Positions 1,627 through 50,157 of a DNA stretch of 64,000 nucleotides are shown here, one piece after another; the first letter of the stretch is position 1, and every line of letters starts with the position of its first letter. Origin of the DNA: Macrostomum lignano (Eukaryota); assembly GCA_002269645.1 (NCBI GenBank), contig NIVC01000230.1:620001-684000 (forward strand), in the 5' to 3' direction. The position numbers and the translations under genes were made by a program. The notes beneath the pieces were generated by a model, which was not told the origin of the DNA, did no database searches, and worked only from the letters and a program-made list of their open reading frames with translations.

Positions 1627-2562
1627 GTTATACCAGGGCTGAATTTCGCCGATCAATTCGATTCTATTGTAGGACAAGTCCAAAACCTTCAGAGTCTGCG
1701 CAGAGGCCCTGAACCAGTAGCAGTGTCTGTTCTTGCCCGTTCCGTTTTGTACCGGTGGACGCCAGCAGATCCAGTCGCGGTACAAGCCGGAGATGCGGTT
1801 GTGGCTCAGGTTGACAGTCTGGAGGTTCCCAAGCAGGCTAAGCGAATAGGGTATTTCATTAAGTTTATTGAAGCTGAGGTCCAAGTAACTCAGTCCGACG
1901 CCCCAAGGAACCTGTTTGCTCAAGTTCTGCTTATTTTCGCTCTTGTTAAACTCCTGATGACCAAACACCAACGAAAAGTCAATGTTATCGTTGTCCATCA
2001 TGTCGTACAGGTATGTTACTTTGTTTAGTCGTCCCGAAGCATTGTAGCTGTACTTCAGATTCTCGAAAGCCTTTTTAACAAGTTTGTTATGGCTATTCAA
2101 CCAAGATCTGTTTTTGACCAGCTGTGCTAAAAGCTCGTCTAATGCATTGAGCGTCACTTGCAGTGCGTCGCTGCCGAACTCGGAAATGTTGCAGTGAGCC
2201 ATTGTCAGACTGTCGATATTTCTCAGAGCCAAGAGGTTTTGCACTGACACCCAGGTGATTGGCGAGTACCGAATCTGAATGCTGCGCAGATGCGTGCACC
2301 GATGCGTGATGTACACGGGAAGGAAATAAAGGTCTACCCTGTCCAAGTGAAGGTACGTCAGCTTGCAGTCGGACTTGTTGAAGTCCTTCGGGTAGGCGAC
2401 CTCTACAGTGTAGTAGCCGCCTACTCCAGGCTTCTCGGGTATTCCGAACTGCGCCAGTTTCATTTCCTCTCGCAGCTCGACATGCTCCAACTCCAGCTGA
2501 GTCGCGTCAACGTTGATGTTGATAGGACAACCGATTATCAAGACTTCGGCTGGCGGATACAC
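1627..2562 (-). CDS. Toll-like LRR receptor copy B, exon 2 (312 codons)
   Basis: Acceptor tttcAG|GTG at 2563/2562 and donor AAC|GTGAGT at 1627/1626, both phase 0. LRR motifs LSYLDLSFNKL, LQTVNLSHNRI, LKVLDLSYNRI. Same length as, and highly similar to, copy A exon 2. The next exon would lie before position 1. Confidence 0.88.
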
Positions 2563-2848: not shown

Positions 2849-3220
2849 CTTAATAGTCATCTTATTTTTGTAGTGCGCTAGGCTCAGCTGCCGAAGATCC
2901 ACTGTGGCGCAGTTGTGACAACCGCTGCAGTCAATCGTGAGATTCAAAACAACTCTGTAAAGAATTAATGAGCACGGAACTCCCGATTCGGGTGGCACTT
3001 CGAGCCGGTGAGAGATTTTGCAGTAAAAGTCATATCCCGACGGGTGGCCGGAGTCGCAGAGGCACTGGCTGTAGTTGTCATTAAAGACAACAAAACTGCT
3101 TTGGATTTGATCTTCTGGGTAATTAACTTTACCGCGGTGTCTGGAGCTCTGAGATGCAGTAAAACTTGACATCATTGCAAATAAGCAGATGCAGCTCAGT
3201 AACGCCAAGGTACTATTCAT
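2849..3220 (-). CDS. Toll-like LRR receptor copy B, exon 1 (signal peptide plus Cys-rich cap, 124 codons)
   Basis: Starts at an ATG with a hydrophobic leader (MNSTLALLSCICLFAMM). Cys pattern matches copy A exon 1. Donor AAG|GTGAGT at 2849/2848, phase 0. Identical 372-nt length to copy A exon 1. Confidence 0.85.
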
Positions 3221-4445: not shown

Positions 4446-4604
4446 TCACTTCCTGTACAGCACTCCGTCCAGCCAAAGCCCCAGCGCCTCGACGTCGCAG
4501 ACCTCCGCGCTCATGTCGAACCAATTCGTCGCCGGCCCGGACTCTCCGCCGTCCAGTCGCTGATTCGCCAACGCCCGGTAGCGAGCTCTCGACCGGCTGT
4601 CCAC
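4446..4604 (-). CDS. Terminal exon completing the second TIR domain (52 aa plus stop)
   Basis: Acceptor tttcgcctgcAG|GTG at 4605/4604, phase 0 matching the upstream donor. Translates VDSRSRARYRALANQ...NWFDMSAEVCDVEALGLWLDGVLYRK*. Confidence 0.65.
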   Translation of the reverse strand: MDSRSRARYRALANQRLDGGESGPATNWFDMSAEVCDVEALGLWLDGVLYRK

Positions 4605-4706
4605 CTGCAGGCGAAAGACGATTGATTTATCTCATTCATACAGATCAGTGAGGCAAAGCTACTCAAAACTCAGACCTGCTCACTCAGCTGATTGCGAGAG
4701 TCTCAC

Positions 4707-5116
4707 CTGTCCAACCTGAACTACCAGCAGGCGGCGTCTGAACGAGTTTGCAGCGAGGAAGGCTTGGAACTCGCACTGCAGCTCGGCCTCGTCTCTGAAC
4801 CAACTGAGCAGGCCGTTGCTGAGCAGCAGCACAAACTGGCGAGTTCGCTTCATCAGGAAGCTGTTGATGCGGCCGGCTTGCGAGGCGCCCTCGAAGTTGT
4901 CAGGCCAGCGAGCAGCCAGGACCGCGTCGTTGGTACCGAGCCGAACGCCTGAGAGGCGACAAGCTATAAGCTCGACGACGGTGTTTGAGCTCGAAGCTGA
5001 GTTGGCTCGGAACTCGGAGTCAGAGGAGGACTCGGGGGCGGACAGGATGAAGACCTCCGGCACTTTGTCCGAGTGGAACGGCGGCCAGTCACTGATCGTG
5101 CCCATACCGCGATTTT
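4707..5116 (-). CDS. Exon encoding a second, divergent TIR domain (likely exon 4 of Toll copy A, or part of a TIR-only gene)
   Basis: TIR-like motifs in order: PEVFILS (box1), SGVRLGTND (betaB/BB), RTRQFVLLLSNGLLSW (betaC), CEFQAFLA (alphaC), RRRLLVV (betaD). Acceptor acttcAG|AA at 5117/5116 is phase 1. Donor CAG|GTGAGA at 4707/4706 is phase 0. Confidence 0.7.
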
Positions 5117-5645: not shown

Positions 5646-7916
5646 TCAATTTCTAAGAACGGACACAGCCTCTAAAAAATTTAACACTGACTTACTCATA
5701 AAATCCCATGTGCGATCAACATCTACAATAAGCGGCTGCACATCGCTTGGTTGTTCCACCATCTCTTCTGCTGCTAAAACAACTGAACATTCCGGTTCGC
5801 CGGCAGCTACCGTAGTTTCTGGAACCACTGACTGGTCAAACAAGAGGACCGTGGCCGGATCTCGGTTTCGAATGCGCTCGATGAGTCGGTATTCCCAGTC
5901 CACCGACTTGTATACGATGTCGCTCCCTGCGAGGATTCTCTGCAGAGTGTGGAACGCCTCCACGTCCTCAGGTCCGAGCTGTCTCTGGCGCTGAAGCGAC
6001 ACTCTGCGCGAGCTCAGGCGCAGAAACACAATGTCCTTGAACGGATTCCGACCTACGCTGTCGAGCTCTCGAATCACCTGGCACAGAGCGAGGTACTGGG
6101 TGTCGAGAAACCTCTCGGTCAGAGCTACCACCACCTTGCCGCTGAACTTGGCTCCCTCAGCTGGACAGTCAAAGTAGGTGAGCGGACAGGAGCACAGGTC
6201 CGAGTAGAGGAAGCTCTCCGGAACGCACAGCTCGAGCTCGTCTCCGCCCGAGGCGCTGCGCACGCAGTTCAGCACGTCGACCAGACAGTCCTGGTCTCTG
6301 TCCGACGCCCACAGCATCGCGTCGTACGGCAGCGAGTCCCGAGATGCCTGATGCTGCAGTCGCCGACTGCTCTGGTACTTGAGGAGGATGAGGACTCGAA
6401 CAACGGCCAGCAGTCGGTGTCGACGGCGGACAGCGAGCATCGCGAGACCGAGCAGCACGAGACCAAATGCTGATGTCAGAACGATCCGGACGGTCTGCTT
6501 TCGCTGCTGTGCTGCCGAGTTTGCTATGAGCTCGCACACTTTGACAAGTCTGCCCTCATCGCTCACTTGATAGTCTGTTGAGTTTCCTAGCTTCTCACAG
6601 GCCCCATTCCACTTGTGATCGTGACTGTTGGCCGTACAGGCGTCAATTATAACTTGGTCGACACTGCAGGTCATACGTTGAAAGTCGGACACTACTTGTG
6701 TAGACTTAGAGACCTGAAGCAGCGTTTGATGCAACTGCAGCCATTCTTTAGTGCAGGAGCATTGCCACGGGTTGTCACTTAGAGTGATGTCCATTAGACT
6801 CGGCAAGCAGTTCTCATTGAAAATCTCAACATCAAGTGTTGTCATGTTGTTATTTTTTAATGATATCCTTTGGGTGTTGTTTGCGAAAGTGCATATCGAC
6901 TCTTTTTTGAAACTCTTGATTCGATTGTGATCCAATTCTATCCGAGTTAGGCGGTGGTCGAAATTAAAAGCCCCGTTCTCAATGTAAACAATGCCACTGT
7001 TGCTTAATTCCAGAAACTCCAGCTGTGCGGAAAAACTCTGAGGCTTCCACTTGAAGGTTCCAGACGATATGTGGCGAAGACTGTCGACACCGTGGATGTC
7101 TGACATGTCAATTTTCTTTACTGGATAGTCGATAACCAACTGTGACAGTCTGAGTGATTTGTTTTGACATTGTAAGTTGAAGAATGTCCAGTCTTCATTG
7201 TGATAACAGGAGCATCCTGCCATGCAGTACACCCAGCAGTTTTTAGAATCCGTGCAGTTCCTGCTTGGTAGATTGTGCTTCTCGTTGCCTTCAAAGTTGC
7301 AGAGAAATCGTACAGACTGCTGCTTGGCCTCACGGAGAGAGAGATTTACTTTGCCTCTGTTTGGATCAAAAAACGTGCAGTTTGAGTCCATCTCCTCATC
7401 CGGAATTCGGGGATAATGGTATTCGCTATGTTCGGCCCACGGGGAATTCTCCTCCTCTTCGAATGTCTTCATGTAGACACTGCCGCAGTCGCAGACTAAA
7501 TTATTTTGCTGGTTCTTTGCGTACAGCACCACTCTGGAGCCCAGTGTCGTTCTCTTCGTCATAGTCATGCTGTCGTAGTAGATATGCCGCAAGTTGTTGT
7601 TGCTGAGGTCAATGAAGTCCAGCATCTTAAGATTATTGAATGCACCTGTTTCAATCGCAGTAATGCAATTATTGGCCAGCTTAACTCTGTGCAGTTGAGA
7701 AGATCTTGGCACGGAGTCATACTGGACGTTTCCTAACTGATTGTGCTGAATACTGATCTCCTCCAGTCGCTCTAAGCTGGACAGTAAGAAGTACGTCAGT
7801 TTATTATCATCCAAGTTCAAAACAAGAAGACTGGATTTTAAGCGGGACTTTGCGAACGCTTCCGGGTTTATAGTGGTAATCTGGTTGCCTTGGAGATAGA
7901 GTTCCGCCAATTGGAC
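5646..7916 (-). CDS. Toll-like receptor copy A, exon 3: LRRs, LRRCT-LRRNT cluster, LRRs, LRRCT, TM, divergent TIR
   Basis: Acceptor tattcgcAG|GTC at 7917/7916, phase 0. LRRCT NNLVCDC, LRRNT CMAGCSCYHN...C, second LRRCT NPWQCSC, TM IVLTSAFGLVLLGLAMLAV. TIR motifs PYDAMLWASDRD, LELCVPESF, SGKVVVALTERFL. Open to a stop at 5646. A perfect internal donor A|GTAAGT lies at 5696/5695. Confidence 0.92.
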   Translation of the reverse strand, partial: VQLAELYLQGNQITTINPEAFAKSRLKSSLLVLNLDDNKLTYFLLSSLERLEEISIQHNQLGNVQYDSVPRSSQLHRVKLANNCITAIETGAFNNLKMLDFIDLSNNNLRHIYYDSMTMTKRTTLGSRVVLYAKNQQNNLVCDCGSVYMKTFEEEENSPWAEHSEYHYPRIPDEEMDSNCTFFDPNRGKVNLSLREAKQQSVRFLCNFEGNEKHNLPSRNCTDSKNCWVYCMAGCSCYHNEDWTFFNLQCQNKSLRLSQLVIDYPVKKIDMSDIHGVDSLRHISSGTFKWKPQSFSAQLEFLELSNSGIVYIENGAFNFDHRLTRIELDHNRIKSFKKESICTFANNTQRISLKNNNMTTLDVEIFNENCLPSLMDITLSDNPWQCSCTKEWLQLHQTLLQVSKSTQVVSDFQRMTCSVDQVIIDACTANSHDHKWNGACEKLGNSTDYQVSDEGRLVKVCELIANSAAQQRKQTVRIVLTSAFGLVLLGLAMLAVRRRHRLLAVVRVLILLKYQSSRRLQHQASRDSLPYDAMLWASDRDQDCLVDVLNCVRSASGGDELELCVPESFLYSDLCSCPLTYFDCPAEGAKFSGKVVVALTERFLDTQYLALCQVIRELDSVGRNPFKDIVFLRLSSRRVSLQRQRQLGPEDVEAFHTLQRILAGSDIVYKSVDWEYRLIERIRNRDPATVLLFDQSVVPETTVAAGEPECSVVLAAEEMVEQPSDVQPLIVDVDRTWDFMSKSVLNFLEAVSVLRN

Positions 7917-8359
7917 CTGCGAATAGCAAAAATTTAGACAGGCACTTTGGTAAATACTACTTGTGATTGCAATCAAAGCTCGCAGAATGTTTAGCTAATG
8001 AATATGAGGGGCCCCACACCTTCGCAGTTTCACTCATTGTTTGACCTCAATTTTTATAACCCTTCGTTTTGATGCCCTCTCTCTCCTCTCACTTAGGGGC
8101 TGAGTAGCAAAGCAGTAGCAAAGCAGTCTCGGAAACTTAGCGATTAGCGCTTGAAGGCACAGAGAGAGTCCACATGCCTGACGCTTATAAAGTCAGAGCC
8201 GCTGTACACTCTGTGTGAGCGTATGTGTTCAAGAGTCGGCGGAAGAGGCAATTTCCGTCGGTTGTGGGACAATTTTGAGCTAAGACGTTGCGCCAGGGTG
8301 CTTACAACCCCTCTTGAAATTTTAGTGTAAACAATTAACTAAATAAGTTATTTACTCAC

Positions 8360-9295
8360 GTTATACCAGGGCTGAATTTCGCCGATCAGTTCGATTCTAT
8401 TGTAGGACAGGTCCAAAATCTTCAGAGTCTGCGCAGAGGCCCTGAACCAGTAGCAGTGTCTGTTATTGTCCGTTCCGTTTCGCACCGGCGGAGGCCAGCA
8501 GATCCAGTCACGGTACAAGCCGGAGATGCGGTTGTGGCTCAGGTTGACAGTCTGGAGGTTCCCAAACAGGCTAAGCGAATAGGGGATCTCTGTTAGCATG
8601 TTGTTCGCCAGGTTGAGGTAGCTGAGTTTCACCCCCCAAGGAACCTGTTTGCTCAAGTTTTGCTTGTCGCTCTCATGAAATTCCTGATGACCAAACACTA
8701 ACGAAAAGTCAATATTATCGTTGTCCATCATGTCGTACAGGTATGTCACTTTATTCAGTCGGCCTGAAGCATTGTACATTTGCTCCAGTTTGTCTACGGC
8801 TCTCTGAGTAAGGTTGTTTCCATCAATTCCCTTTGTTCCGTTTTGCACCCGCTGCGCCACCAACTTGTCCAATGCATCGAGAGTTATTTGAAGTGCATCG
8901 CTGCCGAACTCGGTAACGCTGCAATGAGCCATTGTCAGACTGTCAATGTTTCTCAGAGCCATTAGTCCTTTCACTGACACCCATGTGATTGGAGTGTTCC
9001 AAATTTGAATACTGTGCAGGCTTTGGCATCTGTACATGAGGTATTCGGGCAGGTACCAAATGTCGACAGTATCCAATTTCAGGTACTTTAACCAACAGTC
9101 CGACTCATTGAAGTTGTTCGGATAGGTGACTTCCACAGTGTAGTAGCCGCCGACCCCAGGCCTCTCTGGAATTCCGAACTGCGCCACCTTCATTTTGTCG
9201 CTAAGGTTGACTTTCTCCAGTTGCAGCTGGCGGGCGTCAACGTTAGCGCTGATGACCTGGCAGTTGAATATGTTGACCGCGGGTGGTGGATACAC
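8360..9295 (-). CDS. Toll-like receptor copy A, exon 2 (312 codons, LRRs with non-LRR islands)
   Basis: Acceptor attgtAG|GTG at 9296/9295 and donor AAC|GTGAGT at 8360/8359. The phase 0 join gives QPWYN|VQLAELYLQGNQI, continuing the LRR register. Confidence 0.9.
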
Positions 9296-9635
9296 CTACA
9301 ATGCAGCGTTTTTAGAGTGGAATTATTCAAGACATTGTTAGATACTTGGTGATGGCGGGTTGCATCACTTTTTCGGAATTTTCGTCATTGCTGCTATTCT
9401 TGTCACAAGTCGGTTGAATCGTTGGTTTTGACTTTAATTAAAACAAAAAAAGTTATTATTCTAAAGTTAAAATTCTGACCGCCAACTGATGTTTCCTTTC
9501 CTGTGGACATGTGCTTTGACAAAACCAGTATAATACCATAACCAGCTATAATAAAGACGTAAAACTACAGAATGCCACACGTTTGCAACCGAACTGATCA
9601 AAACTCAGCATTGAAGTGCAGAAAAGACAAGCACC

Positions 9636-10587
9636 AGGGGCCGTGCTATAGATTTAAGAGCCAGGGGTTAAGGAGTTAGGAGTAAGGAGTGCTCCTAGCA
9701 AGGAGTGAATCGATTTTGCGTGGTCTAGAGTTCAAGAATCAAGAGTTGGGAGCTAGGATTGTTTCAAGGAGTGCGGCATGGGAATGAGGAGGAGTTCTAA
9801 GGAGCGTAAGGTGATTGGCTAAGGAGTCTGCCAATCTGCGTACTATATTTAAACTCCTAAATGTACACATCCTTGGGTTTAATTCAAGGAGTAATTCGAC
9901 AAAATATACGGTTCAATCTTTATTACCCTGTCAAAAGCGGGAGCTAAAGCAATAAAACCACTTTAGACTACAAGCCTGCGCATTTGGTTAGGAGCGACAG
10001 GGAGCGCATTTAATTAGTTGATAGACTAGACCATAGAAAACGGTTAACTGCTATCGTAATTAATTAATTGCTCCCATTTGATAAACAACTAACTTAAAAA
10101 CCTAAGATGATTTTTTTGTTTTAAGACGGAACACATGTTTGTTGAAACTGGCGTACAAGAATGTACAGTGTAGAAGTGCATGGGGTAACATAAGCCAGTG
10201 GCGGATCCTGCAGGATTTGAAAAGTGAGGGCTGAGGGGTAGAGGCAAAAGATGACAAAAATAACACTCCTACGAACCTAGGAGTATAATTTGGCCCTTAA
10301 AATCTTAACTTGGAGTTAGGAGCTAGAAATGAAATTCGCTCCTTCTATATTGGACACCCGCTCCTAAAATTCACTCTTAATGGCAACTCCTCCCTCCTAC
10401 TCCCCACTCCTTGTTCTATAGCACGCGACAAACCTTAATGAGATCTCCTAAATTCACCTTAAAGGAGCCTCCTAGCTTTTAAAATTTAGTCGATTCTATA
10501 GCACAGAAAAGAGCCATCTGGGAGCTAAGAGTTTGGACACTCTTAAGGATTTAGGAGTTAAGAGTATTCTATCGCACCGGCACAGTG
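9636..10587. mobile_element. Non-autonomous hAT-like DNA transposon in intron 1 of Toll copy A
   Basis: 8-bp direct repeat ACAAGCAC at 9628-9635 and 10588-10595. CA...TG termini. Imperfect TIR (CAGGGGCCGTGCTATAGA vs TCTATCGCACCGGCACAGTG). AGGAG motifs in the left arm are mirrored by CTCCT in the right arm. Confidence 0.7.
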
Positions 10588-11052
10588 ACAAGCACTCAGT
10601 GCTGGACGTGAGCTAGCTAAATGTTTAACTTGCTGGTTAGCTAGTTAATGTTCTTAAAAATAGCGTTATCTGCCGTTGTCTGCCCAGCACTTCAAGCACT
10701 ACGGCAAAAAGATAGTCAATGGCAGGGGTCTACGCGGGCACTGACGAAAATCAAGGCCACAGTCGACCCGCAACCAACCAAGTTGGCAAGCAGTCATGCC
10801 CAGACCACTGACCGATGAACACGTATAGACACGCAGATACGAACTCAAGCATTCGCCCACTCAGGGTGTACAGTGTCTTTGATTTCCTCATTATCAGGCT
10901 CGTGGTTGACCCTCACAACTGTACATCGAACAAAAATATCCCAAAGCAATTTCTATGAAAGAGCCGCAATTCATGAACCCTTGCAGTTTGTAATTTTGAA
11001 ATTTAATCCACAACGAGTTTGTTTTTTAGATCCACAATTGCTTTCCAATCAC

Positions 11053-11424
11053 CTGTACGCCCATTTGCGTCTTGTCGTGCCTGAGCGTGAGCTGTCGCAG
11101 GTCGAGAGTGACGCATTCGCGACATCCGGAGCAGTTAATCGAAAGATGCGCTGCCACTCGGTAAGGAATTTCGTCGCACGGAATGCGGAGTGCTGGTAGC
11201 AGATCTGCATCGAATGTCTTGGGGGAAAGTTCGCAACTGTAATCGAACTCAGATGGGTCGCCGTAGCTACAGAGGCACTCATGGGTCTCGCTGCTATTTC
11301 CGTTAAAAACGAAATAGCTGCCTTGGATAAGTTCCTCCGGGAAATCAGCATTTTTGTTGATGGATCCTTTAGCGAACGTCCATGCCACCGCGGCGCAGCA
11401 GAGGAGGAAGACAATGAACTTCAT
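11053..11424 (-). CDS. Toll-like receptor copy A, exon 1 (signal peptide plus Cys-rich cap, 124 codons)
   Basis: MKFIVFLLCCAAVAWTFA signal peptide. Donor CAG|GTGATT at 11053/11052, phase 0. Homologous to 2849-3220. Confidence 0.87.
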
Positions 11425-13820: not shown

Positions 13821-14050
13821 CTGACTGACTGACTGACTGACTGACTGACTGACTGACTAACTGACTGACTGACTGACTGACTGACTGACTGACTGACTGA
13901 CTGACTGACTGACTGACTGACTGACTGACTGACTGACTGACTGACTGACTGACTGACTGACTGACTGACTGACTGACTGACTGACTGACTGACTGCACTG
14001 ACTGACTGACTGACTGACTGACTTACTTACTTACTTACTTACTTACTTAA

Positions 14051-14092
<42 letters not shown>

Positions 14093-14093
14093 G

Positions 14094-14172
<79 letters not shown>
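13821..14172. repeat. Compound microsatellite (CTGA)n then (CTTA)n
   Basis: Directly visible. The unit switches at ~14022. Confidence 0.97.
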
Positions 14173-15638: not shown

Positions 15639-15861
<223 letters not shown>

Positions 15862-16295
15862 CATACCATGGGAATCAGGAAAATCGCTAATTCCGTGGGA
15901 ATATTCGGTAGAAACGCAGCCTGCGCCTCATCATCGGCGCCCTACCAACCTCCGCAGTACGCGTATTCGCTCTTTAGAGCAATAAAAAGAATTCAAAATG
16001 CAAAAAGACCGCCAAAAGAGCTGCAGGTTTCTGAAAGCGAAAGCACCCGCCTTATTAAAACTGCTTCGGGCTGGCACAGCTTTCGGACTCCCAATGGCGC
16101 TTGCCTGTCAAACTTGTTGCTGGATGTTGCTGCTTTTCAGACTCTGCTTCTGCAGGCTGTTTAATGGAGAAATAATTTATTTCGGTTGAAAAACAATTAT
16201 ATTTTACAGCAGCATAGAGGATGAAGAACAGAGAAGCGCAGAGCAGAAAATGAATGTTAGAATTAACGGAAAATACATGACTCAGAGAGGGGGGT

Positions 16296-17040
16296 GACAG
16301 TAGAGAGGGGAGTGAGAGTAGAGAGTGGGAGTGAGAGTAGAGAAGGGAGTGAGAGTAGAGAGGGGAATGAGAGTAGAGAAAGGAGTGAGAGTAGAGAAGG
16401 GAGTGAGAGTAGAGAGGGGAGTGAGAGTAGAGAGGGGAGTGAGAGTAGAGAGGGGAGTGAGAGTAGAGAGGGGAATGAGAGTAGAGAAGGAAGTGAGAGT
16501 AGAGAGGGGAGTGAGGGTAGAGAGGGGGAGTGAGAGTAGAGAAGAGAGTGAGAGTAGAGAGGGGAATGAGAGTAGAGAAGGAAGTGAGAGTAGAGAGGGG
16601 AGTGAGAGTAGAAAAGGGAGTGAGAGTAGAGAAGGGAGTGAGAGTAGAGAAGGGAGTGAGAGTAGAGAGGGGAGTGAGAGTAGAGAGGGGAGTGAGAGTA
16701 GAGAGGGGAGTGAGAGTAGAGAGGGGGAGTGAGAGTAGAGAGGGGGAGTGAGAGTAGAGAGGGGGAGTGAGAGTAGAGAGGGGAGTGAGAGTAGAGAGGG
16801 GGAGTGAGAGTAGAGAGGGGGAGTGAGAGTAGAGAGGGGAGTGAGAGTAGAGAGGGGGAGTGAGAGTAGAGAGGAGGAGTGAGAGTAGAGAGGGGGAGTG
16901 AGAGTAGAGAGGGGGGTGAGAGTAGAGAAGTGGGGTGAGAGTAATGGGGGAGTGAGAGAAGAGAGGGGGAGTGAGAGTAGAGAGGGGGAGTGAGAGTATA
17001 AAAGTGGGGTGAGAGTAAAGGGGGAGTGGGAGTAGAGAGG
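16296..17040. repeat. Purine-rich ~18-19-bp minisatellite (GAGAGTAGAGAGGGGAGT)
   Basis: Tandem units with G-run length variation. Confidence 0.93.
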
Positions 17041-18279
17041 GAAATTAGGTTAATGCGATAGAGATAAGAAAGCTTAACTACTGACACCTGATATCAAACA
17101 CCGGAACCGAAAATAATAGGTTAAGTATTTATTTTCATATCTATATATTCCCACCTTTTCAGATTTTAAGCTAGGAGTATACAGTTCATTGCAAATATTT
17201 TCTGGTTTCAATTTCGTTCCCAGTTTGCGCTTAAATTATTCAACGGCATTACCGTATACAAGCGCGCGCTTTGTCCCGCAGTTTTACAACTCTCTAGCAG
17301 CTTTCAGTCTCTATTCCAGGAACTGGGTTCGATTTTTTCTTTCCCCTCTCTCTCTCTCTCTCGGCAGTGTGTAAAGCTTCTCTCGGGGTCCTGGAGGCGG
17401 CCAGACCAAGAGCCTACATGTACCCCAAGCCCTCAATATAGCTCGTAGTACACGAATATTGACTTATCTTGAGCTGGACTCAACAGAAATTTTGATCCCA
17501 CACTCAGATTGTAGTGATTGAACGAATTATTAAAATATCACTTCTAAACAGTGGTATCCGCTGGGGGGGGGGGGCGTTTGAGGGCTTGACCAACTGTCAA
17601 GTCAATGAAATAGCTACAGGTAACTGACAAGCTACATCGCAAATGTAATCCGTAGTCCGTTCGTATATGGAATGAAAAAATGATTTTTTGGAGAGACATT
17701 GCCCGTGGATCTCCTTTGCTTAAGCTTCTCCGTTCGGGCATCGATAGCAGTGGAATACAGCATGGTTGGGACTGTTTACAGGTGTACAGGCCATTGTTGC
17801 TGTTCACACTAATTATAAACGGCACATCAGGATGCGGGATTAAGCGACATCTGTCAGTCAATGGCGGATGCTGGGAGGACTGTGGGGCATTCACGATTGA
17901 AAAGTGTGCAGCGGTAGATATTGGAATGGAATGTTTAGTGTCTTCTCTGTGTGTCAGTCGCTCATTCAACTGTTCGCGCTCCTAACCAGTTTGAGGGCTT
18001 GTAAAAGTTAGTGCAGAAAAAGTTTGTTTTAAATATAACAAAGCTGCATTGCGAGCGTTTGAAATCGTTGCATAAAGCAGAATTGATGGTGAGTCAGTTA
18101 ACCACGAAGTGAAACTGGTAATTTTTTTAACGCATGGGTTTTCACTTTCAATCAATGCTTGAAGGTTGTTACTCATTTTGCATTGCAGCTGCAGCTAGTG
18201 GATGCAAGCAGCAGAATTCTCGGATAAGTGCTGGGTGCATAGGACAGGTACACAAACAGATGCGCAGGTACAAAGGTAC

Positions 18280-20427: not shown

Positions 20428-20685
20428 GCGCCCCTGGTGCTAAAGTCCCTGTTGCTAAAGCCCCTGGTGCTAAAGCCCCTGTTGCTAAAGCCCCTGATAC
20501 TAAAGTCCCTGGTGCTGAAGCCCCTGGTGCTAAAGCCCCTGGTGCTAAAGCCCCTGGTGCTAAAGCCCCTGTTGCTAAAGCCCCTGTTGCTAAAGCCTTT
20601 GGTGCTAAAGTCCCTGGTGCTAAAGCCCCTGGTGCTAAAGTCCCTGGTGCTAAAGCCCCTGTTGCTAAAGCCCCTGGAGCTAAAA
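20428..20685. repeat. 15-bp minisatellite (GCCCCTGGTGCTAAA)n; also at ~47855-47920 and ~49360-49440
   Basis: The same unit occurs at three dispersed loci in the window. Confidence 0.92.
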
Positions 20686-24653: not shown

Positions 24654-24951
<298 letters not shown>

Positions 24952-26875
24952 CCCGTGTGGCCATCTGATCAGGTTTTTCGCCCGGTAGGCGATCGGGATT
25001 TTTGCCCGGTTTGTAATACATTTTTTCCTATCTAAAAACCCGAAAATCCTCGGGAAAGTGGTCTCGAAAACGGACGAAGACGGCAGTTTCGTCTGGTTGT
25101 TCGTCAGGAATTTCGTAGAGGACATCAGGTATTTTCTCGGGTTTCTCTTCGGCTACTCAAACTGATGAGTACCCTGAATAAAACCCGACAAATGACCGGA
25201 TGAAAGTGCAATAGCAGAACCCGGGAAATAACCGGGGCAAAATCAGACTAAAACCTAACGAAAGCGACACGACGACCCAACCGGACGAATACCCGGAGCA
25301 AAATCAGACTAAAACCTAACGAAAGCGACACGACGACCCAACCGGACGAATATCCGGGGCAAAATCAGACTAAAACCTAACGAAAGCGACACGACGACCC
25401 AACCGGACGAATATCCGGAGCAAAATCAGACTAAAACCTAACGAAAGCGACACGACGACCCAACCGGACGAATATCTGGAGCAAAATCAGACTAAAACCT
25501 AACGAAAGCGACACGACGACCCAACCGGACGAATACCCGGAGCAAAATCAGACTAAAACCTAACGAAAGCGACACAACGACCCAACCGGACGAATATCCG
25601 GAGCAAAATCAGACTAAAACCTAACGAAAGCGACACGACGACCCAACCGGACGAATACCCGGAGCAAAATCAGACTAAAACCTAACGAAAGCGACACGAC
25701 GACCCAACCGGACGAATATCTGGAGCAAAATCAGACTAAAACCTAACGAAAGCGACACGACGACCCAACCGGACGAATATCCGGAGCAAAATCAGACTAA
25801 AACCTAACGAAAGCGACACGACGACCCAACCGGACGAATATCCGGAGCAAAATCAGACTAAAACCTAACGAAAGCGACACGACGACCCAACCGGACGAAT
25901 ACCCGGAGCAAAATCAGACTAAAACCTAACGAAAGCGACACGACGACCCAACCGGACGAAAAACCCTGCATCCCTATCAAATTGTGTCTACTCTCGGAAA
26001 TATGTAGTGCCGACTTAGTAAAACATCTACAGTGCGCTTCTGTCAACGGATACCGTGAAGAGTGAAGAAGTAAGAAAATTGTCAGTGTTAATACAAAATA
26101 TGTAACGTTCCATCTTGCAATTCATCAAACTGTTCCAAATCACCTACAAGATCAATATACTCCTCTGTTTTTTTATTCCAAAGATGTTGTAGAATACAGT
26201 CAGTAGGCGCATAGTCGCTAGTCATCTAGGCGCATAAATGCGGGAATTTAAAATCACTTCTGACTGGCCAAAAGTATGTTGGAATCCCACAGTAGCATGC
26301 AGCCTTCAGAAATGTGTGCGATGACAGCATTAAAATGACAATATTTTTATTCTCAGTTTACGTGAACTACGCTCGTAATGTAACATACGAAGACGCTCAT
26401 ATGGTATATATAAAGACGAGCGGAAAAAATACTGCAAGAGAACAAAACAGGAGCACATTACAGGACATACAATTACAAGAAAATCTTCATGTCAATTGTC
26501 AATTATACACTGTGTCTCCCATACCATTTTCAACCCAATCCTGAATTAAAGGCTTTCACCAGCTCTTTTCTCCGGCTCTTGTCCGGTCGAAGAACCAGAG
26601 AAAGAACCGGGCAAAATTCCAGGCGGAATTGTTATTTCATCCGCTTTTACTCCGGATTTGCCTGCGTTACTAAACTGGTTCCAAACCTGGCGAAGGACCG
26701 GGTAAAAAACCAGAGCACTCGTACGGTTTTTCCTCCGGAATTTCGCCTGGTTTAGAAAGGCAGAGAAAAACCGGATAAATTCGCCTGGTTTATGTTCTTC
26801 GCCTGGAAATGGGGCAAAAAACATAGCAAGCCAGAGCAAAACCGGGCGAAAAACCTGATCGGATGGCCACACGGG
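24952..26875. mobile_element. ~1.92-kb non-autonomous DNA transposon, probably CMC/EnSpm-like
   Basis: ~35-bp TIRs: CCCGTGTGGCCATCTGATCAGGTTTTTCGCCCGGT and ACCGGGCGAAAAACCTGATCGGATGGCCACACGGG. 2-bp AG duplication; removing the element restores a perfect GATA repeat. No transposase ORF. Confidence 0.8.
25230..25962. repeat. 61-bp tandem repeat (~12 copies) inside the transposon
   Basis: Unit AAAATCAGACTAAAACCTAACGAAAGCGACACGACGACCCAACCGGACGAATA(C/T)CCGGAGC, near-identical copies. Confidence 0.95.
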
Positions 26876-33697: not shown

Positions 33698-36600
33698 ATG
33701 CTTAACTCGATTAGCCTTGTCGCCCTGCTGTGGGCCATCAGCTGCGCACCCTTCATCTTGGCCGCGAGTCGCGAGGTGAACTTCGAATGCGACGAAGAGA
33801 CTGATCTGAATGCGGGAGTTGGTAACTTATGGCGAGCCTTAGGCAGCCCAAGCCGCCTCTCAGACTTCAGACTCATGCCGGAGTCGCCCTACTTCAAAGT
33901 TGACAAGGAAAGCAACGTGCGCATCAGAGGGCGAATCGACCGCGAGGATCCGGTCGCTTGTCCCGACGCAGGCGAGACTCGACCCTGCGTGATCGAACTC
34001 AACGCTTTCTCAGACAACGACCGGACTGTGGTGCGCATCACCATTAAGGATATAAACGACAATGCGCCGGTGTTCAAAGAGCCACAGAAAGAATTGATCG
34101 TCGAGGAGGGCGATACAAATTTTCAGTGCCCGCTGGATGCGGCAACCGATGCGGACATTGGTGACAATGGAATGCTCATTAAAGGTCACTACTTCCTGAT
34201 TGGCGTTGGGGGGCAATTTTCACTAAAGCAGAGACATCAGCAAGGCGCGCTGTACCTCGTGCTGGCTAAAGGAGCCCAGGCTCTGGACTATGAGACCGCA
34301 CAGCAGCACTTGCTAAACCTGACCGCTTGCGACGGTGGTTTAAATCCGAACTGTACCAGCCAGCGACTCATAGTCCGGGTACGCGATCGCAATGACAACG
34401 CGCCGATTGTAACGCCAGACGCGTGGCCGGCAGTGCCGGACACGCTGCCCGTTGGCGGTCGGGTGGGTAAAGTGACCGCCACGGACGCGGACAGTGGCGA
34501 AAATGGCCGCCTGACATACAGCATCACTGGCGATAGAAAGTCCATGGAAGCATTCGTTATTAACGAAACAACTGGCGAAGTCCGATTGCACCGCCGACTA
34601 AATGCGCGAAGCCATCTTCAGTACGTCATTCAGGTGCTAGTCTCAGATAATGGAACTCCCAGCCGCCAAACAGTGACTAGCTTCCCTCTGAGCGTCCGAG
34701 ACGCCAACGATCACGCACCGAACATTTCAATCCTTCCGATGGTCCAGCGATTGCAGCAGAAAGGTACACCTGAAGCAACCAAGAACTCTGGAATGGTTTT
34801 AGTCCGGGAGAACGCGAATACAGGCGCCTCACTAGCTTTCATTCAGGTGACCGACGAAGATCTAGAAGACAATGGTCGCACAACTTGTCAGCTTGGTGAG
34901 CCAGGAGCGGAGCTGTTTCGGCTTACGTCGTCTGGAGAGAAAGATTACATGCTTTACAGCCTGCAATCCCTGGACTACGAGGCACAGACAAGGACTAGCG
35001 TTCGAATCGATTGCCGCGATGCCGGGTCTCCGCCGCAGTCGCAAGCAAAGTCGTGCAAATCAAAGTTGAGAATGTAAATGAGTTTTCGCCGGAGTTTCAA
35101 TCTTCATATTACAACGCCACGGTTGAAGAGTCGAACGGTCAACATGATGACAACGGTGTAGGACGGCCAGTGCTCACTATTGAAGCCATTGATAGGGACC
35201 GAGACGACCCGCTGACTTTTCAAATTTTAGACGACGGAGCCACTTCCCACGGTCGCTTCTTCGAGGCCGTAGTGAGAGATACATCGAGCTTCTCAAATCT
35301 ACAGGGGGTCAGTCGTACAACAGGTGTAATCAGAGTGAAGTCGTCAATAGATCGAGACTCGCTTCGATTGCCAAACGATCGTTTGGTATTTGTCATTCAA
35401 GTTAAGGACACACCTGACTCCGAAGGTACACAGCACACCGCTAGCGCAAGCGTCACTGTTCGTGTATTAGACGTAAACGACAATGCTCCTGAAATTCTTC
35501 AGCCCCGACTGTACAAGGTACGCGAAAATGCACCGGTTGACACTCCTGTGCTCGCAGCATCAAATGGCGACAGTCGGATCCGATTCACTGATCCCGACGC
35601 TCCCGGACCAAATTCCCGAGCTGAATTTCAACTGCTAGATGTGCGAGCCAAAATTCTTGGCTTGGAAGGTGGAGACCGTTATCTGCGGCCGAGGGAGCGG
35701 CCGTTTCTTGTGACCAAAGACGGTCAGATTAGGACAACAGTCTCGTTGGATCGAGAAGTTCATTCGGCCTATCTAATATCTGTATCTGTTGCCAATACGG
35801 AGGCCCAGCCACGATTGAGCACTACGGCTGAGCTCACAGTGATTGTAGAGGACGAGAACGACAGTCCACCGGTTTGGTCATTTCCGAGGGAGTCCAACCT
35901 CTTTGTGAACATCTCCACTGCGCATCGAATCAATGATGACGTCACCTGGGTGCAGGCGACAGACTCAGACGAATCCAGCAACATCACTTACCAGCTCATT
36001 GATGCAGTTGGCGAACCGCTCACCTGGGTACCGTCGCATGCTTCGTTTTTTCTGGCCATCGACCCAAAGTCTGGCGTGATTCGCTTAGTTGCCCGACCAA
36101 CTCCTGGCCGCCACGTCGTGACAGTCCGTGCTGTGGACGCTGACCGGCCGCAGATGTTTGTAGACACCCAGCTGATCATAAACGTTCTGCGCTACGCTGG
36201 CGACGGCGGACACCTGCGCGAGGCTCAGGTTAACCTGTCAATCATTGTTGCCATGGTGGCGGCAACTTGCCTGGTCAGCCTCTGCCTGGTTTCCGCCATT
36301 GTCTGCGTCCGTCAACGGCGTCATCAGCGATCTGCAGGCGCCGCGTCTTCTGCCGGTGGCTCCTCTTGCGGCAACGGTGGCGGCCTTGGCGTCGAAAAGG
36401 CGTTATCGCCACCGACGCTGCCGCTGCCAGCATCGTGCCAATTCGGCCTCGATGACCAGCTGGACGACTGTGGTGCGCCTGAGCCGCTGTTGTTCAGCGG
36501 CGGCGGTGACATCGGAGGAGGCGGCTGCAGCAGCGGCTGCGGTACACCAACAAGGCACCACCTGCACATGACCACCTTCTGCCAGAGCGACTCACAAGTG

Positions 36601-36747
36601 CTGCCAATGATGCAGTCGCACCATCCGCTGTACTATCCGCAGCATCAGCACCTGCAGCAGCAATCCAAGCAGCCGTTCCGCTTTCCGCATCAGCAGCAGG
36701 CCATGTACCAGCAGCCAAACATGCAGCTGCTTCTGGCTGGAAATGAG
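33698..36747 (+). CDS. Protocadherin, large exon 1 (signal peptide, 7 cadherin repeats, TM, start of tail), with a 1-nt frameshift at ~35040
   Basis: Cadherin motifs DRE, DxNDNAP, AxDxD and LDYE in both ORFs (33698-35077 and 35011-36822). One inserted base between 35040 and 35041 joins them as DAGSPPQS|ASKVVQIKVENVNEFSPEF. TM IIVAMVAATCLVSLCLVSAIVCV. Donor GAG|GTGAAA at 36747/36748. Confidence 0.9.
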
Positions 36748-37795
36748 GTGAAATTTCTTCTTATTGACCAGCGACCAATCATAGAACCTTTGCCCTTCGT
36801 GTGTAGCTTTAACCAGTCTTGATAATTACAACGTTTTACCCTTACTTTTGAGCACTCAAAGCTTCTTTATAGTGACTCCATTCAATTTTGACACTCAATC
36901 ACAGGACACACCGAAACGAAGCATATCATTGTAGAGCTTAATGTTGATGTCCGGGATGTGAAACAGAGTGGACGATTGTGCAGAGAAATCGTTGCATTTA
37001 GTCGTCCTCATTGAATGCTTCACACCTGGCTTTGCTTTCTTCGCAGCAAAATCGTAGTTTCGTCAAGCAACGTCATTAGGCGTCAAAATGTGTGTTGAAT
37101 AGGGTGAAATGGTGCAGTAGGTATAGCTACTAACCCTCACAGAATGATTGACATTGAGAAGGGATGAATTGTGACTCATAGATTACTCGTAGAGAGATGA
37201 AGAATTGGTTCTAGCTTCACTCTCGTGCTCAAAATAATTAGAAGGCCAGTTTTTTTCTAGCACCTTGTCTCTTGAAATAGCTGTACGCTAGTAGATGAAG
37301 CACAAAATTGTGAGATTTAACGCTCGGGTTTCAAATAAGGATCTTCACCAACAGCATAGAACAGGCTGCCCAGTAATTGAGCAGCGTCACGCAGGGACAC
37401 CGAGTGAGTAAAAGTGAGTGCTTAAGCCTTACCGCTTGAGAAAGGATTCTAGTTAACAAAACAACCATAGAATAGAGCCGAAAGAAGAGGATCAAGTTTC
37501 TCCAGAAAATGGTTGCGATTATGGGAATTCCTTATTTAAAAGCTGGAAGTGTGTTCTGTGACCTCGCGTGAACAGTCGGAACAAAAAAAGCAGGTTGGCT
37601 CAGGTTGCCAGAGTTGTGTTGCGCAATGGAGATGACGAGTATTTGTAGTCACTTTCGTTTTATGAACTAACGATTTGAAGCAAATGTTAATTCACTTCGT
37701 GTAGTTCGTATGATGGCTGCTATAGCTAAAATGTAGCACATTTTACGAGCGTACTTGCTCACACATCTCACTGCGATGTTCTGCTTCGCTGCCAG

Positions 37796-38564: not shown

Positions 38565-39859
38565 CTAAAATATTTTTCATAACTGTACAGTCGTGCAGAC
38601 TGTCTCCTCTGTTAGTTGCCTGTCTGCCCAGCCAAGCATAGCAGAGTCGCTTTGCGTTACGGCTATAAATAGCAGCATTTGGGGGCTGACTGGGATTAAC
38701 AGAGAAGGCCACACGTACCTGTAGATTCCAATTGGCCCGTTCGTGCTTGATCTGCTTTGGCAATCGCAGCAATAATACAGTAGTAATAGCAAGGCAAATA
38801 TCTTTTCTAATCGTTGTACGTGCAGCATGGATATAATACGATAGCTTAAAAGCTGTGAATTAATCCACCCTGATGGATAATGCTTCGCATAACTTGCTTT
38901 TTTTGAATAGCAAATACTCTCTTGTCCACTGTCCAATGTTCTGTCAATCGTGTTCTTTTTGTTTAAACTCGTGGCGATTTCAAATTTCTGAACTGTGACC
39001 AGTTTAATCGGATGTTCAATTTTGATTAGCTACTCAGCGTTGTGAGTTTCTTTTTTTCTGAAAGCAACTCGCTTTAGGCTCCATTGTACACTATTAGCGT
39101 ACCTGTGCGTTAGACATTGCTTGCCAACATTGATTCCAAAATTTTCATTTTAAAATAAAAATGGAATATTATTTGCAACTAAATCGATAGCAGAGGGCAC
39201 TGACGCGGCAAGACAGACACGCGAGTAGAGCATGTTTTATTTTCTATCAATTTAAGTGTAAAGTTAATTACAAAAAATTACAACTTATATTACTCCTTAA
39301 GCGAAATATCAATTGAAACGGTCGAGTTACTCGTAGAACAAATAAATTCGAATCGGCGTACAAAAGACGACGAACTAACAAATAAAATATTAAAATTTGA
39401 AAGGGTTTCCGCCAATGACAGAATAGTACGCTCGTATAAAAAAGCACAGAAACAGGACTTATCTCGAGCAACTAAGCAACGAGATAGCTTATCTCGTTGC
39501 TTATCTCGTTGGAAAGGTAAATACTTTCTTCAAAATTGTTAAACACAACCCAAAGCAACATCAGTTCTTTAGAGACCGGATTAAAGAGACCTCACATCAG
39601 AACGTCACATTTATACGAGACGAAGACAAAGCACAAGGCGTCTGGATTTTTCTTCTTTAGACAAGACAGTGATGGATTTCAAGATCTGAGCAATCACATG
39701 CTGAACAAACAAATGAATTGACGAACAGCTTTACTTATAACAAAAAGCACTTTAGACAGAAACTCAGAGCGGACTGTAGCTAAAATTTGCGAGCTTATTT
39801 GTCTGCATAGATGCGCAAATTGGAAAAAATATTGCAAGTCCAGCTTCTTAATTCGAGCA

Positions 39860-40165
<306 letters not shown>

Positions 40166-40869
40166 CAGTTGAGACAGACAGTCTGTGTGATGCCTATGAG
40201 GCATGTGACATGCACCTAGGTAACGTCATATTTCTGTTAGATATCAACCAGGCCGGCGTACTTTATGAATTAAGGGGTTTCAGAAATTCCCCAGTATATC
40301 AGAGCCAGCAGCGCAAACAGGTTGTGTGCCCTGCCTGACGATAAGAGAGTCGGGACAAGAGTCGGTGCCTGCGTGCTTCTTCATTTTCGGGTTCATCAAA
40401 TATCCCTGTGGCTATGGCTACTCAAAGAGAAACTCGACGCCTTTTTTGATGGTGCTCTCTCGGGCATGGCTACAAAATTTGTGCCTATTGTGATCAAAAA
40501 TAAATTCATCAGAAGTTAGTCGGTAGCTTCAATTTGTGTGCTCTCTTTGATGAAAAAATATATCGATAGAGTTGTAATTCGAGATATTTCCATCCTAAGT
40601 AGAAAATTTCCTGTGCCTCAGCGTCTGTAGGATGGAATAACACTCGCCTTAGTTACGGATGTTACGACGGTGACCATGGGAATACCCCCAGTCCTTACTT
40701 CTCCCGAACTCCTGTCTCAGCCGCAAAAAGTTTAATCTGTTTTCTAAGACTATTTTCTACATCTGATTGTGCAACACTGGAGCAATAATTTTCTCCAGAC
40801 TCTCCTGAACCTGCAGGGTTAAGAGGGCGCAGATCTCCACTCCAGTTTTGAAGCTGCCCGCCCAACCAA

Positions 40870-41507
40870 TCAAATGACGCCCCTGTCCAGCAAGTCCTGC
40901 ACATCATCGCACAGGCTGTCGAGCTGCGCGGCAATCGGCGATTCGGAGTCGAACATGTCGCGCAGCAGGCGCGGATCCCGGAAAAACTTCGAGCAGTTGC
41001 GCACCGTCTGCGCCGACTTCTCGCTGAGATGCCGCCGGATGAGGCGCAGCACGAGCTGCTCACAGTCGCCCAGCTGGCCCAGCAGCTCCCCCTGGTTGAC
41101 GGGCGTCTGGCGCTTCTGCATCCGCACCAGAGCCGTCGCCAAGTCGTTGAATTTGTCGCGAAACTCGTCGGCCATCGCCATCTCCTCGTTGTTGAACGCG
41201 TCGTTTAAATACAGGACACCGATTTTCAAATTGATCTTGATGATCTGCTTCATCAGCTTCTGGGCTGCCTGCCTGGACTGGGTGTGAGTCTTCACGATTT
41301 TGTACATCTTGTCAAACACCCGAGCCGACGGTGCGTCGAGGAAGATTTTAATGGCCTTCTTAGAGGCCAGCTGACTTGCGATTTTCTTCTGAGCGCGCAG
41401 ACTGAAAGTCGGCGTACTGAATGTGTCATCGCCGTCCAAAGTTGATCCAGCGACTGACGGCGAGGCCGATGCAGGGCCGCCCACTGCGCCATGCTCTGAC
41501 GATGCGC
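40870..41507 (-). CDS. TNFAIP8: TNFAIP8/TIPE-family protein, main exon
   Basis: Family motifs FSLRAQKKIASQLASK, KLMKQIIKINLKIGVLY, LIRRHLSEKS and C-terminal LLDRGVI*. Acceptor tttgcAG|GC at 41508/41507, phase 1. Confidence 0.92.
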
Positions 41508-42072
41508 CTGCAAATTTGCAGAAAGTAAGCACTAAAACATTCAATCTGTAGATTGTGCATGCTGGTCTTGCGCTCCTTTCACCGATCTATTTGTCCCTCC
41601 TTTTTCTACATTCACAGACTTGTTTTAGCGTTGACATACACCAACATTTTTTACAATTTAGATTTAATAAGAACGTATGGATGTAGGTATTTCACCATTT
41701 ATATGATCGAAATTTGTTCCTTAAGGGTATCAATCAGCGTTCCAATGCTAAGTTTGCCAAGTCAAGAGAATTTTCAGAGTACTAACGCTTAACGAAGTTG
41801 CAATATTATTTGCACAGCCATTAGTGGTAAAGAAAGACTGCATAGATAAGATTAGAACAAGTTAGGATTATAATTATTACCCTGTACAGCTAGCTATCCA
41901 AGTTTGACAGGATTTCTGTCAAAAAAATTCTCAGCACAATTAGTCATTATTATTACGGGTCGAGCTAAAACTAAAACCGAAGTACATCCAACACGTGAGT
42001 CACCACCAGCCGCGCCAGTATATATATTAGATAAAAACGCTTTAAATGCAAATGTGCTTAAGGGGCCGACAC

Positions 42073-49061: not shown

Positions 49062-49589
49062 CTGCCAGAGCCATGCATTGGTTGGACGAGATATACTCGT
49101 TCATTGAGAGGCATCGTTAATGACTGAGAACGTATGTAAGAACTCGATAAATTGCTACACGGGATAGCAAACTACGCTCGTAGTTGCAACAAAAACAACA
49201 ACAGAATACGCAGTTAGCGTCACAGGGCGCGCTTCAAGGCCAGATCGCGAATGAACGCCATGCCGTCGGCCAAAACTGGGGCGCCGGCGTCAGCCAGCAG
49301 GCAGTCGACAAAACGCCGAGTGCGCGCCTGCCCCCGCCGGTAGGGTGCCTACACCTCGCGCCCTGGTGCTAAAGCCCCTGGTGCTAAAGCCCCCGGTGCT
49401 AAAGCCCCTGGTGCTAAAGCCCCTGGTGCTAAAGCCCCTTCAAGGGCGCCAGGTAGTTGCAACTGACCCAAGCTTTCAAGCTCGGGGTCCCAACCTCCAT
49501 CTTGTATCCCAAATCCTCTGCTTAACTTGCTCGGCTAGCAACACCTCTAGGAATCCTAATTTGTTCTACTCTAAGTCTATGTCAATTAC

Positions 49590-50061: not shown

Positions 50062-50100
<39 letters not shown>

Positions 50101-50157
50101 CAGAAGCAGAACAGTCAGTGGCCGGTTCCGGTACAGCCGCACTGACAGAAGTCGCAT
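49590..50157 (-). CDS. GT32 (Gly_transf_sug, OCH1/SUR1-like) glycosyltransferase exon 1, type II membrane protein
   Basis: Poly-Leu signal anchor. Motifs ISPLLHQIY, LWTDADA, QRSDALRYFILHHYGG. Donor G|GTAATT at 49590/49589. The four-exon model gives 412 aa. Confidence 0.9.

Follow-up and report, generated by a model that had tools for sequence, protein, structure and literature searches.

Does a flatworm possess a Toll receptor? The question is raised by a minus-strand locus in a 64,000-nucleotide stretch of the Macrostomum lignano genome (GenBank assembly GCA_002269645.1, contig NIVC01000230.1, positions 620,001 to 684,000), here termed the window, in whose coordinates all positions are given unless another contig is named. 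Published surveys have answered in the negative. Toll-like receptors (TLRs), defined by leucine-rich repeats (LRRs), a transmembrane helix and a TIR domain in one protein, were sought with a HMMER TIR profile and then SMART, with a result of zero for M. lignano, and the early-branching position of this species was used to argue for early TLR loss in Platyhelminthes (Orus-Alcalde et al., 2021; PMC8609888). Platyhelminthes are likewise listed without TLRs by Saco et al. (2023; PMC10279657) and flatworms in a planarian review (PMC7958881), so the reported absence cited in a first-pass annotation of the window is indeed the published position. No report of a Macrostomum TLR came up in the literature search. 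The analysis described here shows the locus to be an intact five-exon M. lignano gene; its product, 1365 amino acids in length, is probably a Toll-family receptor with type I membrane topology.

The gene runs from 11424 to 4446 on the minus strand, and its five exons encode 1365 residues, of which 433 form the cytoplasmic tail. All exon junctions are GT-AG and in frame, the joins among 11424-11053, 9295-8360 and 7916 onward are in phase 0, and the frame is open throughout its 1365 codons. The exons and the signal peptide are as follows.

11053 to 11424, minus strand: exon 1, 372 nt, with the ATG at 11424 and the donor CAG/GTGATT at 11053/11052.
11368 to 11424, minus strand: predicted signal peptide MKFIVFLLCCAAVAWTFA, residues 1-19, a hydrophobic N-terminus recognized from the sequence.
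8360 to 9295, minus strand: exon 2, 936 nt, with acceptor TTGTAG/GTG and donor AAC/GTGAGT, phase 0.
5696 to 7916, minus strand: exon 3, 2221 nt, with acceptor TCGCAG/GTC and donor ATGA/GTAAGT at 5696/5695.
4707 to 5116, minus strand: exon 4, 410 nt, with acceptor CTTCAG/AA and donor CAG/GTGAGA; the junction agrees with the M. lignano paralog P0002.
4446 to 4604, minus strand: exon 5, 159 nt, the last three being the stop TGA (4448-4446), with acceptor CTGCAG/GTG.

In exon 1 the signal peptide is followed by a Cys-rich N-terminal region, which gave zero Pfam family matches, and exon 2 encodes the N-terminal ectodomain with the first LRRs (Pfam LRR_8, E = 3e-11). Exon 3 (LRR_8, E = 3e-22) carries LRR block 1, an internal cysteine cluster, LRR block 2, a juxtamembrane LRRCT, the transmembrane helix, a first tail domain (TIR1) and an acidic linker. 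The end of the linker and most of a second tail domain (TIR2; EVFILSAP, RWPDNFEGAS, TRQFVLLLS, RRRLLVVQVGQ) are encoded by exon 4, which shows 91% nucleotide identity to an M. lignano paralog, and the C-terminal part of TIR2 (YRALANQRL...NWFDM...) is encoded by exon 5, which is colinear with the C-termini of the paralogs P0001 and P0002. Exons 4 and 5 are backed by these two paralogs, which extend about 190 residues past the product that stops at 5646. The first-pass annotation had bounded the gene at 5646 and 11424; the start stands, whereas the other boundary has to be moved to 4446, as the stop at 5646 is met only by read-through of the exon 3 donor (5696/5695), which adds 16 codons. The M. 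lignano model P0003 terminates by a similar intron read-through (...PVT-SKYNCQSFL, stop). As P0003 ends in this same way, an intron-retaining isoform bearing TIR1 alone may exist.

The order of parts in the product is signal peptide, Cys-rich N-terminus, LRR block, LRRCT-LRRNT cluster, LRR block, juxtamembrane LRRCT, transmembrane helix and tail. LRR_8, together with LRR_4, LRR_1 and LRR_5, scores above the Pfam cut-offs, and about 10 LxxLxLxxNxL motifs can be counted. The elements on which the type of the ectodomain depends are the following.

7167 to 7505, minus strand: internal LRRCT followed by LRRNT, residues 574-686, reading NNLVCDC...YPRI...C...FLC and then CWVYCMAGCSCYH...C.
6534 to 6773, minus strand: juxtamembrane LRRCT (NPWQCSC...), residues 818-897; NPWqCsC aligns with NPWaCeC of Tollo.
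6429 to 6485, minus strand: putative transmembrane helix IVLTSAFGLVLLGLAMLAV, residues 914-932, 19 hydrophobic residues read from the sequence.

Within the internal cluster, NNLVCDC lies at residue 574 (window 7505) and CWVYCMAGCSC at residues 663-673 (7238). The cluster matches the corresponding junction of spider Tollo (P0052) residue for residue, and its cysteines are invariant in a four-member family alignment. By phmmer, residues 468-825 are collinear with spider Tollo over the whole succession LRR-LRRCT-LRRNT-LRR-LRRCT (domain E = 1.2e-10), and the motifs CDC, YPRI, FLC, CxxxCxxxCxC...W and NPWxCxC are common to the two proteins. The Pfam LRRCT and LRRNT models matched the product in neither case; the presence of more than one LRRCT and of an LRRNT inside the ectodomain comes from the Tollo alignment. 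The transmembrane helix is aligned in all four family members and is directly followed by a stop-transfer motif, RRRHR. In a full-length search, M. lignano proteins (E = 0) were followed at 1e-24 by arthropod Tollo, Toll-6, artichoke and chaoptin. As judged from these alignments, the ectodomain is of Toll type, with the P-type or multiple-cysteine-cluster (mcc) layout, and is more than a mere LRR array. The Drosophila Toll-type layout proposed in the first-pass annotation is thus upheld by the collinearity with Tollo, and the motifs from which it was read (NNLVCDC, CMAGCSC, NPWQCSC, the transmembrane helix, YDAMLWAS, LELCVPESF and KVVVALTERFL) all lie on the minus strand where they had been reported.

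In the cytoplasmic tail the same annotation had recognized one strongly diverged TIR domain; the stretch so named is present, and a second TIR-like domain in exons 4 and 5 had been missed.

5859 to 6332, minus strand: TIR1, residues 965-1122, a strongly diverged TIR domain by profile-profile match.
4449 to 5066, minus strand: TIR2, residues 1194-1365, a tentative assignment, split by intron 4 (4605-4706).

TIR1 is placed as the TIR of Toll is, about 30 residues past the transmembrane helix. Its motifs are YDAMLWAS at residue 967 (box 1), LELCVPESF at 997 and KVVVALTERFL at 1030, and the elements include strand B (LELCV), strand C (KVVVALTERFL), strand D (IVFLRL) and a box-3-like DWEYRL. In the profile-profile comparison, made with hhalign, the reference was a set of 54 aligned Toll/TLR TIR domains drawn from protein-search matches. 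With three close family sequences the probability for TIR1 was 67.8%, and after addition of the divergent paralog P0122 it rose to 91.5% (P = 8.7e-7, score 45.8). None of 150 column shuffles reached this score (13.2 ± 2.5, maximum 24.1), and the reversed alignment scored 13.5. When a 190-column window was slid along the entire family alignment and compared with the TIR profile, exactly two peaks appeared, one at TIR1 (score 46, 92%) and one at TIR2 (score 32, about 49%), with ectodomain windows scoring 9-16.6 at probabilities below 1%.

A relaxed hhalign alignment covers TIR1 end to end and is collinear over boxes 1-3. The pairings with the TIR profile are PYDAMLWAS with LYDAFVSYS, LELCV with YRLCL, FSGKVVVALTERFLDTQY with SSRRTILILSENFLKSEW, IVFLRL with LLVIAL, and DWEYRL with LFWDRL. 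In an AlphaFold2 (AF2) model of TIR1 built from a four-sequence alignment (predicted local distance difference test, pLDDT, 65; predicted template-modelling score 0.66), the elements are ordered bA-aA-bB-aB-bC-aC-bD-aD-(bE)-aE, which is the TIR order, at positions that agree with the hhalign alignment. For TIR1 as it occurs in P0122, Pfam lists a single family, PF01582 TIR, at a sub-threshold E of 0.11. In UniProt the paralogs, including P0003, which has TIR1 only, are automatically named "TIR domain-containing protein", and fragments are named "Protein toll". The former name presumably reflects a match to PROSITE PS50104. These automatic names already hint at a TIR in the M. lignano paralogs, ahead of the literature.

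A further observation concerns the TIR1 region that is predicted to contain the BB loop. Four cysteines occur there, in LCVPESFLYSDLCSCPLTYFDCP (residues 1000-1020, window about 6227-6165). They are kept in the clade of the window gene, P0001 and P0002 and are absent in P0122, and the stretch is disordered in the AF2 model.

Could the tail nevertheless be something else? An LRR-only "TLR-like" receptor might combine a Toll-related ectodomain with a lineage-specific alpha/beta domain distinct from TIR, the shared motifs being convergent or generic to Rossmann-like folds. Such LRR-only proteins have been reported, with data unshown, in all groups that lack TLRs, flatworms included (PMC8609888). 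Several results weigh on that side and against a Toll-family assignment. At E <= 10, neither the window protein nor P0002 matched Pfam TIR or TIR_2, in a scan that gave the Toll TIRs of six arthropod proteins E-values of 1e-9 to 1e-19. Pfam applied to exon open reading frames (ORFs), P0002 and isolated domains gave no TIR better than E = 0.1. Neither phmmer nor hmmsearch against all PDB sequences found a TIR, and a hidden Markov model (HMM) from six Toll TIR seeds reached only E of about 0.02-0.03 in a 121-sequence set. TIR1 is without the canonical box-2 motif RDxxPG. Foldseek of the moderately confident TIR1 model against the PDB returned no TIR in the top 50 and nothing significant (template-modelling score <= 0.26), a negative that is not taken as decisive because the AF2 alignment consisted of only four sequences. 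AF2 modelled TIR2 poorly (pLDDT 38). Finally, the protein collection contains no sequence identical to the window protein, and no annotated or transcript-backed model was found for this copy.

The LRR-only explanation nonetheless appears unlikely. It has to account for an hhalign match that is in register over the entire TIR1, for a TIR signal that in the whole-protein scan is specific to the two tail domains, for the fact that the sole sub-threshold Pfam family is TIR, for the TIR names given to the paralogs by UniProt, and for the location of TIR1 at the very place of the Toll TIR. We therefore return to a Toll-family receptor, in which TIR1 very probably is a real, strongly diverged TIR domain, as judged by profile comparison; its fold is structurally unproven. 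The expectation that this TIR had diverged past the reach of HMM surveys agrees with the Pfam scan, which is blank where hhalign is far above its shuffles.

TIR2 is separated from TIR1 by the acidic linker. In hhalign it matched the TIR profile at 36-56% (P = 1-4e-4), with a score of 30.5 against a maximum of 22.9 over 150 shuffles. The relaxed alignment runs end to end through TIR2, pairing RWPDNFEG...TRQFVLLLS with YRDLPVGG...SRRTILILS and NWFDM with LFWDRL, so that the box-2-like RWPDNFEG and the box-3-like NWF are in register. In Foldseek, the low-confidence TIR2 model ranked the AbTir TIR first and had several SPARTA TIR-APAZ proteins and the MyD88 TIR in the top 50, all at E > 1. TIR2, too, is plausibly TIR-derived. 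Direct comparison of TIR1 with TIR2 by hhalign gave a probability of 0.17% and a score of 13, that is, no detectable mutual similarity of the kind expected from a duplication. A 91% identical copy of TIR2 occurs, without TIR1, in P0121 (UniProt A0A1I8HAL1, 2297 aa), a protein named as C2H2-type zinc-finger; P0121 most likely results from a chimeric gene prediction, although it might represent an independent deployment of TIR2.

How does the window gene relate to the rest of the M. lignano genome? The full-length search returned three M. lignano proteins at E = 0, with 51-56% identity; taken over all full-length comparisons within the family, identity is 51-58% over 95-97% of the length. Full-length identity to P0001 and P0002 is 56-58%, and in TIR1 it is 94-95%. 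P0122 (Mlig015932) has the same layout at about 30% identity overall; its tail is only 28-31% identical yet contains both domains, so that the double tail is old. Members of the family comprise BOX15_Mlig017824g1/g2, Mlig027995g1, Mlig028150g1, A0A1I8HAC1 and Mlig015932g1/g2, which UniProt names "TIR domain-containing protein", and from exon 3 onward their exon structure is the same as that of the window gene. The family is multi-copy: one tandem paralog lies in the window, and other regions of the genome contain at least three additional types of paralog. A search for proteins of at least 90% identity to either window gene returned none, and the window gene and its tandem neighbor are paralogs distinct from the known M. 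lignano proteins.

Outside M. lignano, the tail has no evident relatives. When the P0002 tail was compared exhaustively by HMMER with 1.84 billion representative proteins, only the M. lignano proteins P0003, P0121 and P0122 scored meaningfully; three further weak matches were repetitive, unrelated sequences. A word-indexed homolog search with the tail only found nothing, although the tails of P0001-P0003 are 94-95% identical; this type of search is leaky for the receptor family, having also missed P0122 while that sequence was in the query profile, and absence there is not evidence.

The tandem paralog (gene 2, the main window gene being gene 1) lies downstream of gene 1 on the same strand, and two of its exons are within the window.

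2849 to 3220, minus strand: gene 2 exon 1, 372 nt, with the ATG at 3220 and donor AAG/GTGAGT, similar to gene 1 exon 1 by tblastx.
1627 to 2562, minus strand: gene 2 exon 2, with 77% of nucleotides identical to exon 2 of gene 1, GT-AG junctions and LRR_8 at E = 9e-15.

The lengths of exons 1 and 2 are identical in the two genes (372 and 936 nt). Exon 3 of gene 2 was not found in the 1.6 kb that remain before the window start, the remaining part of the gene being outside the window. Between the exon 2 sequences, the nonsynonymous rate (dN) is 0.17 and the synonymous rate (dS) is 0.64, giving an omega of 0.26 for this part of the ectodomain. Positive selection in the ectodomain was considered, and this omega gives no sign of it. 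Along exon 2, dS between the two genes falls from 0.6-1.3 to 0.1 in the final 60 codons.

Comparison with the locus of P0001 (L001, contig NIVC01001362.1) divides the gene into two halves. In blastn, similarity sets in where the last LRRCT begins (6781), and window 6781-4454 matches L001 9280-11391 at 84-91% DNA identity to the gene end, intron 4 included. In the exon 3 ectodomain, dN is 0.51 and synonymous sites are saturated (proportion of synonymous differences, pS, 0.78). In the TIR1 core, dN is 0.011 and dS 0.096 (dN/dS about 0.11); in exon 4 the values are 0.073 and 0.17 (about 0.43), and in exon 5 0.043 and 0.21 (about 0.2). These rates indicate that the half comprising LRRCT, transmembrane helix and tail is under purifying selection and much younger than the ectodomain. 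Purifying selection alone was rejected as the cause of the near-identical tail: dS in the tail is likewise low, at about 0.1-0.2 compared with a saturated ectodomain, and intron 4 can be aligned. The combination of low dS and an alignable intron therefore points to gene conversion or to a recently shared 3' module that has been repeatedly reused. A second copy of the last exon of the family is located at 20508-20660 (minus strand) of L001, with 68% identity, 9 kb downstream of the P0001 gene and convergent to it, so that the family is clustered elsewhere in the genome too.

These rates also bear on whether the copy still signals. A pseudogene, or a decoy with a degenerate TIR, would be a remnant of TLR loss in progress; the missing canonical BB-loop motif of TIR1, the lack of this exact copy in the protein collection, the higher dN/dS of exon 4 and an adjoining cadherin copy that looks frameshifted are in line with decay. 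It is nevertheless improbable that decay explains the locus, as 1365 codons are open over five exons with canonical splice sites, the dN/dS of TIR1 is low, the two-domain tail is kept between paralog clades as distant as those of P0002 and P0122, and several paralogs are intact. The host, suspected at first to be Macrostomum or another flatworm, is identified as M. lignano by the best full-length matches and by an exact protein match of a neighboring ORF. A different Macrostomum species, considered because neither window gene has a counterpart of at least 90% identity, was rejected on account of this exact match. A gene foreign to the flatworm (arthropod or other contamination, horizontal transfer or an assembly artefact) is scarcely credible, for although its nearest ectodomain relatives outside Macrostomum are arthropod Tolls, identity to these is only 21-24%, five or more large M. 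lignano contigs (224-809 kb) carry family members, the window also holds an exact M. lignano cadherin, introns are at conserved positions and relatives of the tail outside M. lignano number 0 among the 1.84 billion representatives.

If the gene product works as Toll and TLR proteins do, an extracellular ligand would bring ectodomains together, and the juxtaposed cytoplasmic TIR domains would nucleate TIR-TIR assembly with an adaptor, thereby starting a kinase cascade. TIR1 is without the box-2 RDxxPG, whereas TIR2 keeps R-x-P-D-x-F-x-G at that place; on this basis one may speculate that it is TIR2 that faces the adaptor and that TIR1 serves as a scaffold. The contrast between diverged ectodomains and a homogenized signalling half suggests a repertoire in which recognition varies while one output is kept. 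The long Tolls, which are the nearest relatives of the ectodomain, act mainly in development. Many gene copies with diverged ectodomains are more suggestive of an immune repertoire, and the role may be either immune or developmental.

A broader scenario may be offered tentatively, with the odds rather against it in its full form. Macrostomorpha might have kept an expanded, tandemly arrayed Toll family in which a module of degenerate TIR1 plus TIR2 is kept nearly constant by gene conversion while ectodomains diversify, amounting to an innate receptor repertoire specific to flatworms; the drifted output domain may signal via a non-canonical, possibly MyD88-independent partner, and TLR loss would have occurred later, inside the phylum. 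Acceptance of these genes as Toll-family receptors would undo the inference of loss at the base of Platyhelminthes and place it after the split of Macrostomorpha. The suggestion in the first-pass annotation that the claimed lineage loss needs revisiting is supported to the extent that the probable TIR assignment holds. More generally, an HMM-based domain census can report as lineage loss what is extreme divergence of the diagnostic domain. The homogenized signalling half, joined to ectodomains that are saturated with change, is also a lead on the evolution of receptor repertoires. M. lignano offers RNA interference, transgenesis and a sequenced genome, and the function of Toll receptors in a regenerating flatworm is directly testable there.

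The remainder of the window contains other genes and abundant repeats. A cadherin gene at 33698-36822 (plus strand) is represented by two overlapping ORFs in different frames, of 459 and 603 amino acids. The 459-residue ORF (33698-35074) is exactly an M. lignano protein in NCBI and UniRef, whose cluster mates (Mlig024261) have 1140 amino acids, and the window copy seems to be frameshifted, by being a pseudogene or through an assembly indel. Two minus-strand neighbors, at 40870-41541 and 49585-50157, are a gene for a TNFAIP8-like protein, with a Pfam match at E = 1.7e-48, and a fragment of a DXD-motif glycosyltransferase. A 7.3-kb satellite array occupies 56642-63987 and reaches the window edge; it consists of about 245 copies of a 30-bp unit (72% matches) with a 449-bp higher-order period, and the strong negative guanine-cytosine skew at the window end is due to it. 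Tetranucleotide arrays (CTGA, GTCT, AGAT, CAGA) and 18-bp and 61-bp minisatellites are a source of spurious long ORFs ("CLSV" repeats). They are located as follows.

13821 to 14171: tetranucleotide or minisatellite array.
15639 to 15858: tetranucleotide or minisatellite array.
16284 to 17041: tetranucleotide or minisatellite array.
24654 to 24951: tetranucleotide or minisatellite array.
25227 to 25960: tetranucleotide or minisatellite array.
39858 to 40181: tetranucleotide or minisatellite array.

Three known classes of protein invite comparison with the window gene. A survey by HMMER TIR profile would file the gene with the LRR-only "TLR-like" proteins; unlike these, its tail bears a domain that is called TIR by profile-profile comparison. 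The bivalve mccTLRs of the SPP-2TIR type have an mcc ectodomain and two tandem cytoplasmic TIRs, which in mussel are canonical and cluster together, implying duplication (Saco et al., 2023; PMC10279657). The window protein resembles them in combining an mcc ectodomain with two putative TIR-type domains in tandem in the cytoplasm, but the M. lignano domains are far from canonical and mutually unlike, and TIR2 is a tentative assignment. The arthropod long Tolls (Toll-6, Toll-7 and Tollo/Toll-8) share the same order of LRR, LRRCT, LRRNT, LRR, LRRCT, transmembrane helix and (in the window protein, probable) TIR and are the best matches outside Macrostomum, yet at the low identity given above; relative to them, the window protein has fewer recognizable LRRs, a TIR that lies below Pfam detection and the extra C-terminal TIR2. 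Overall, the locus would probably correct a published lineage loss by adding a member to a known kind of system, not a new kind.

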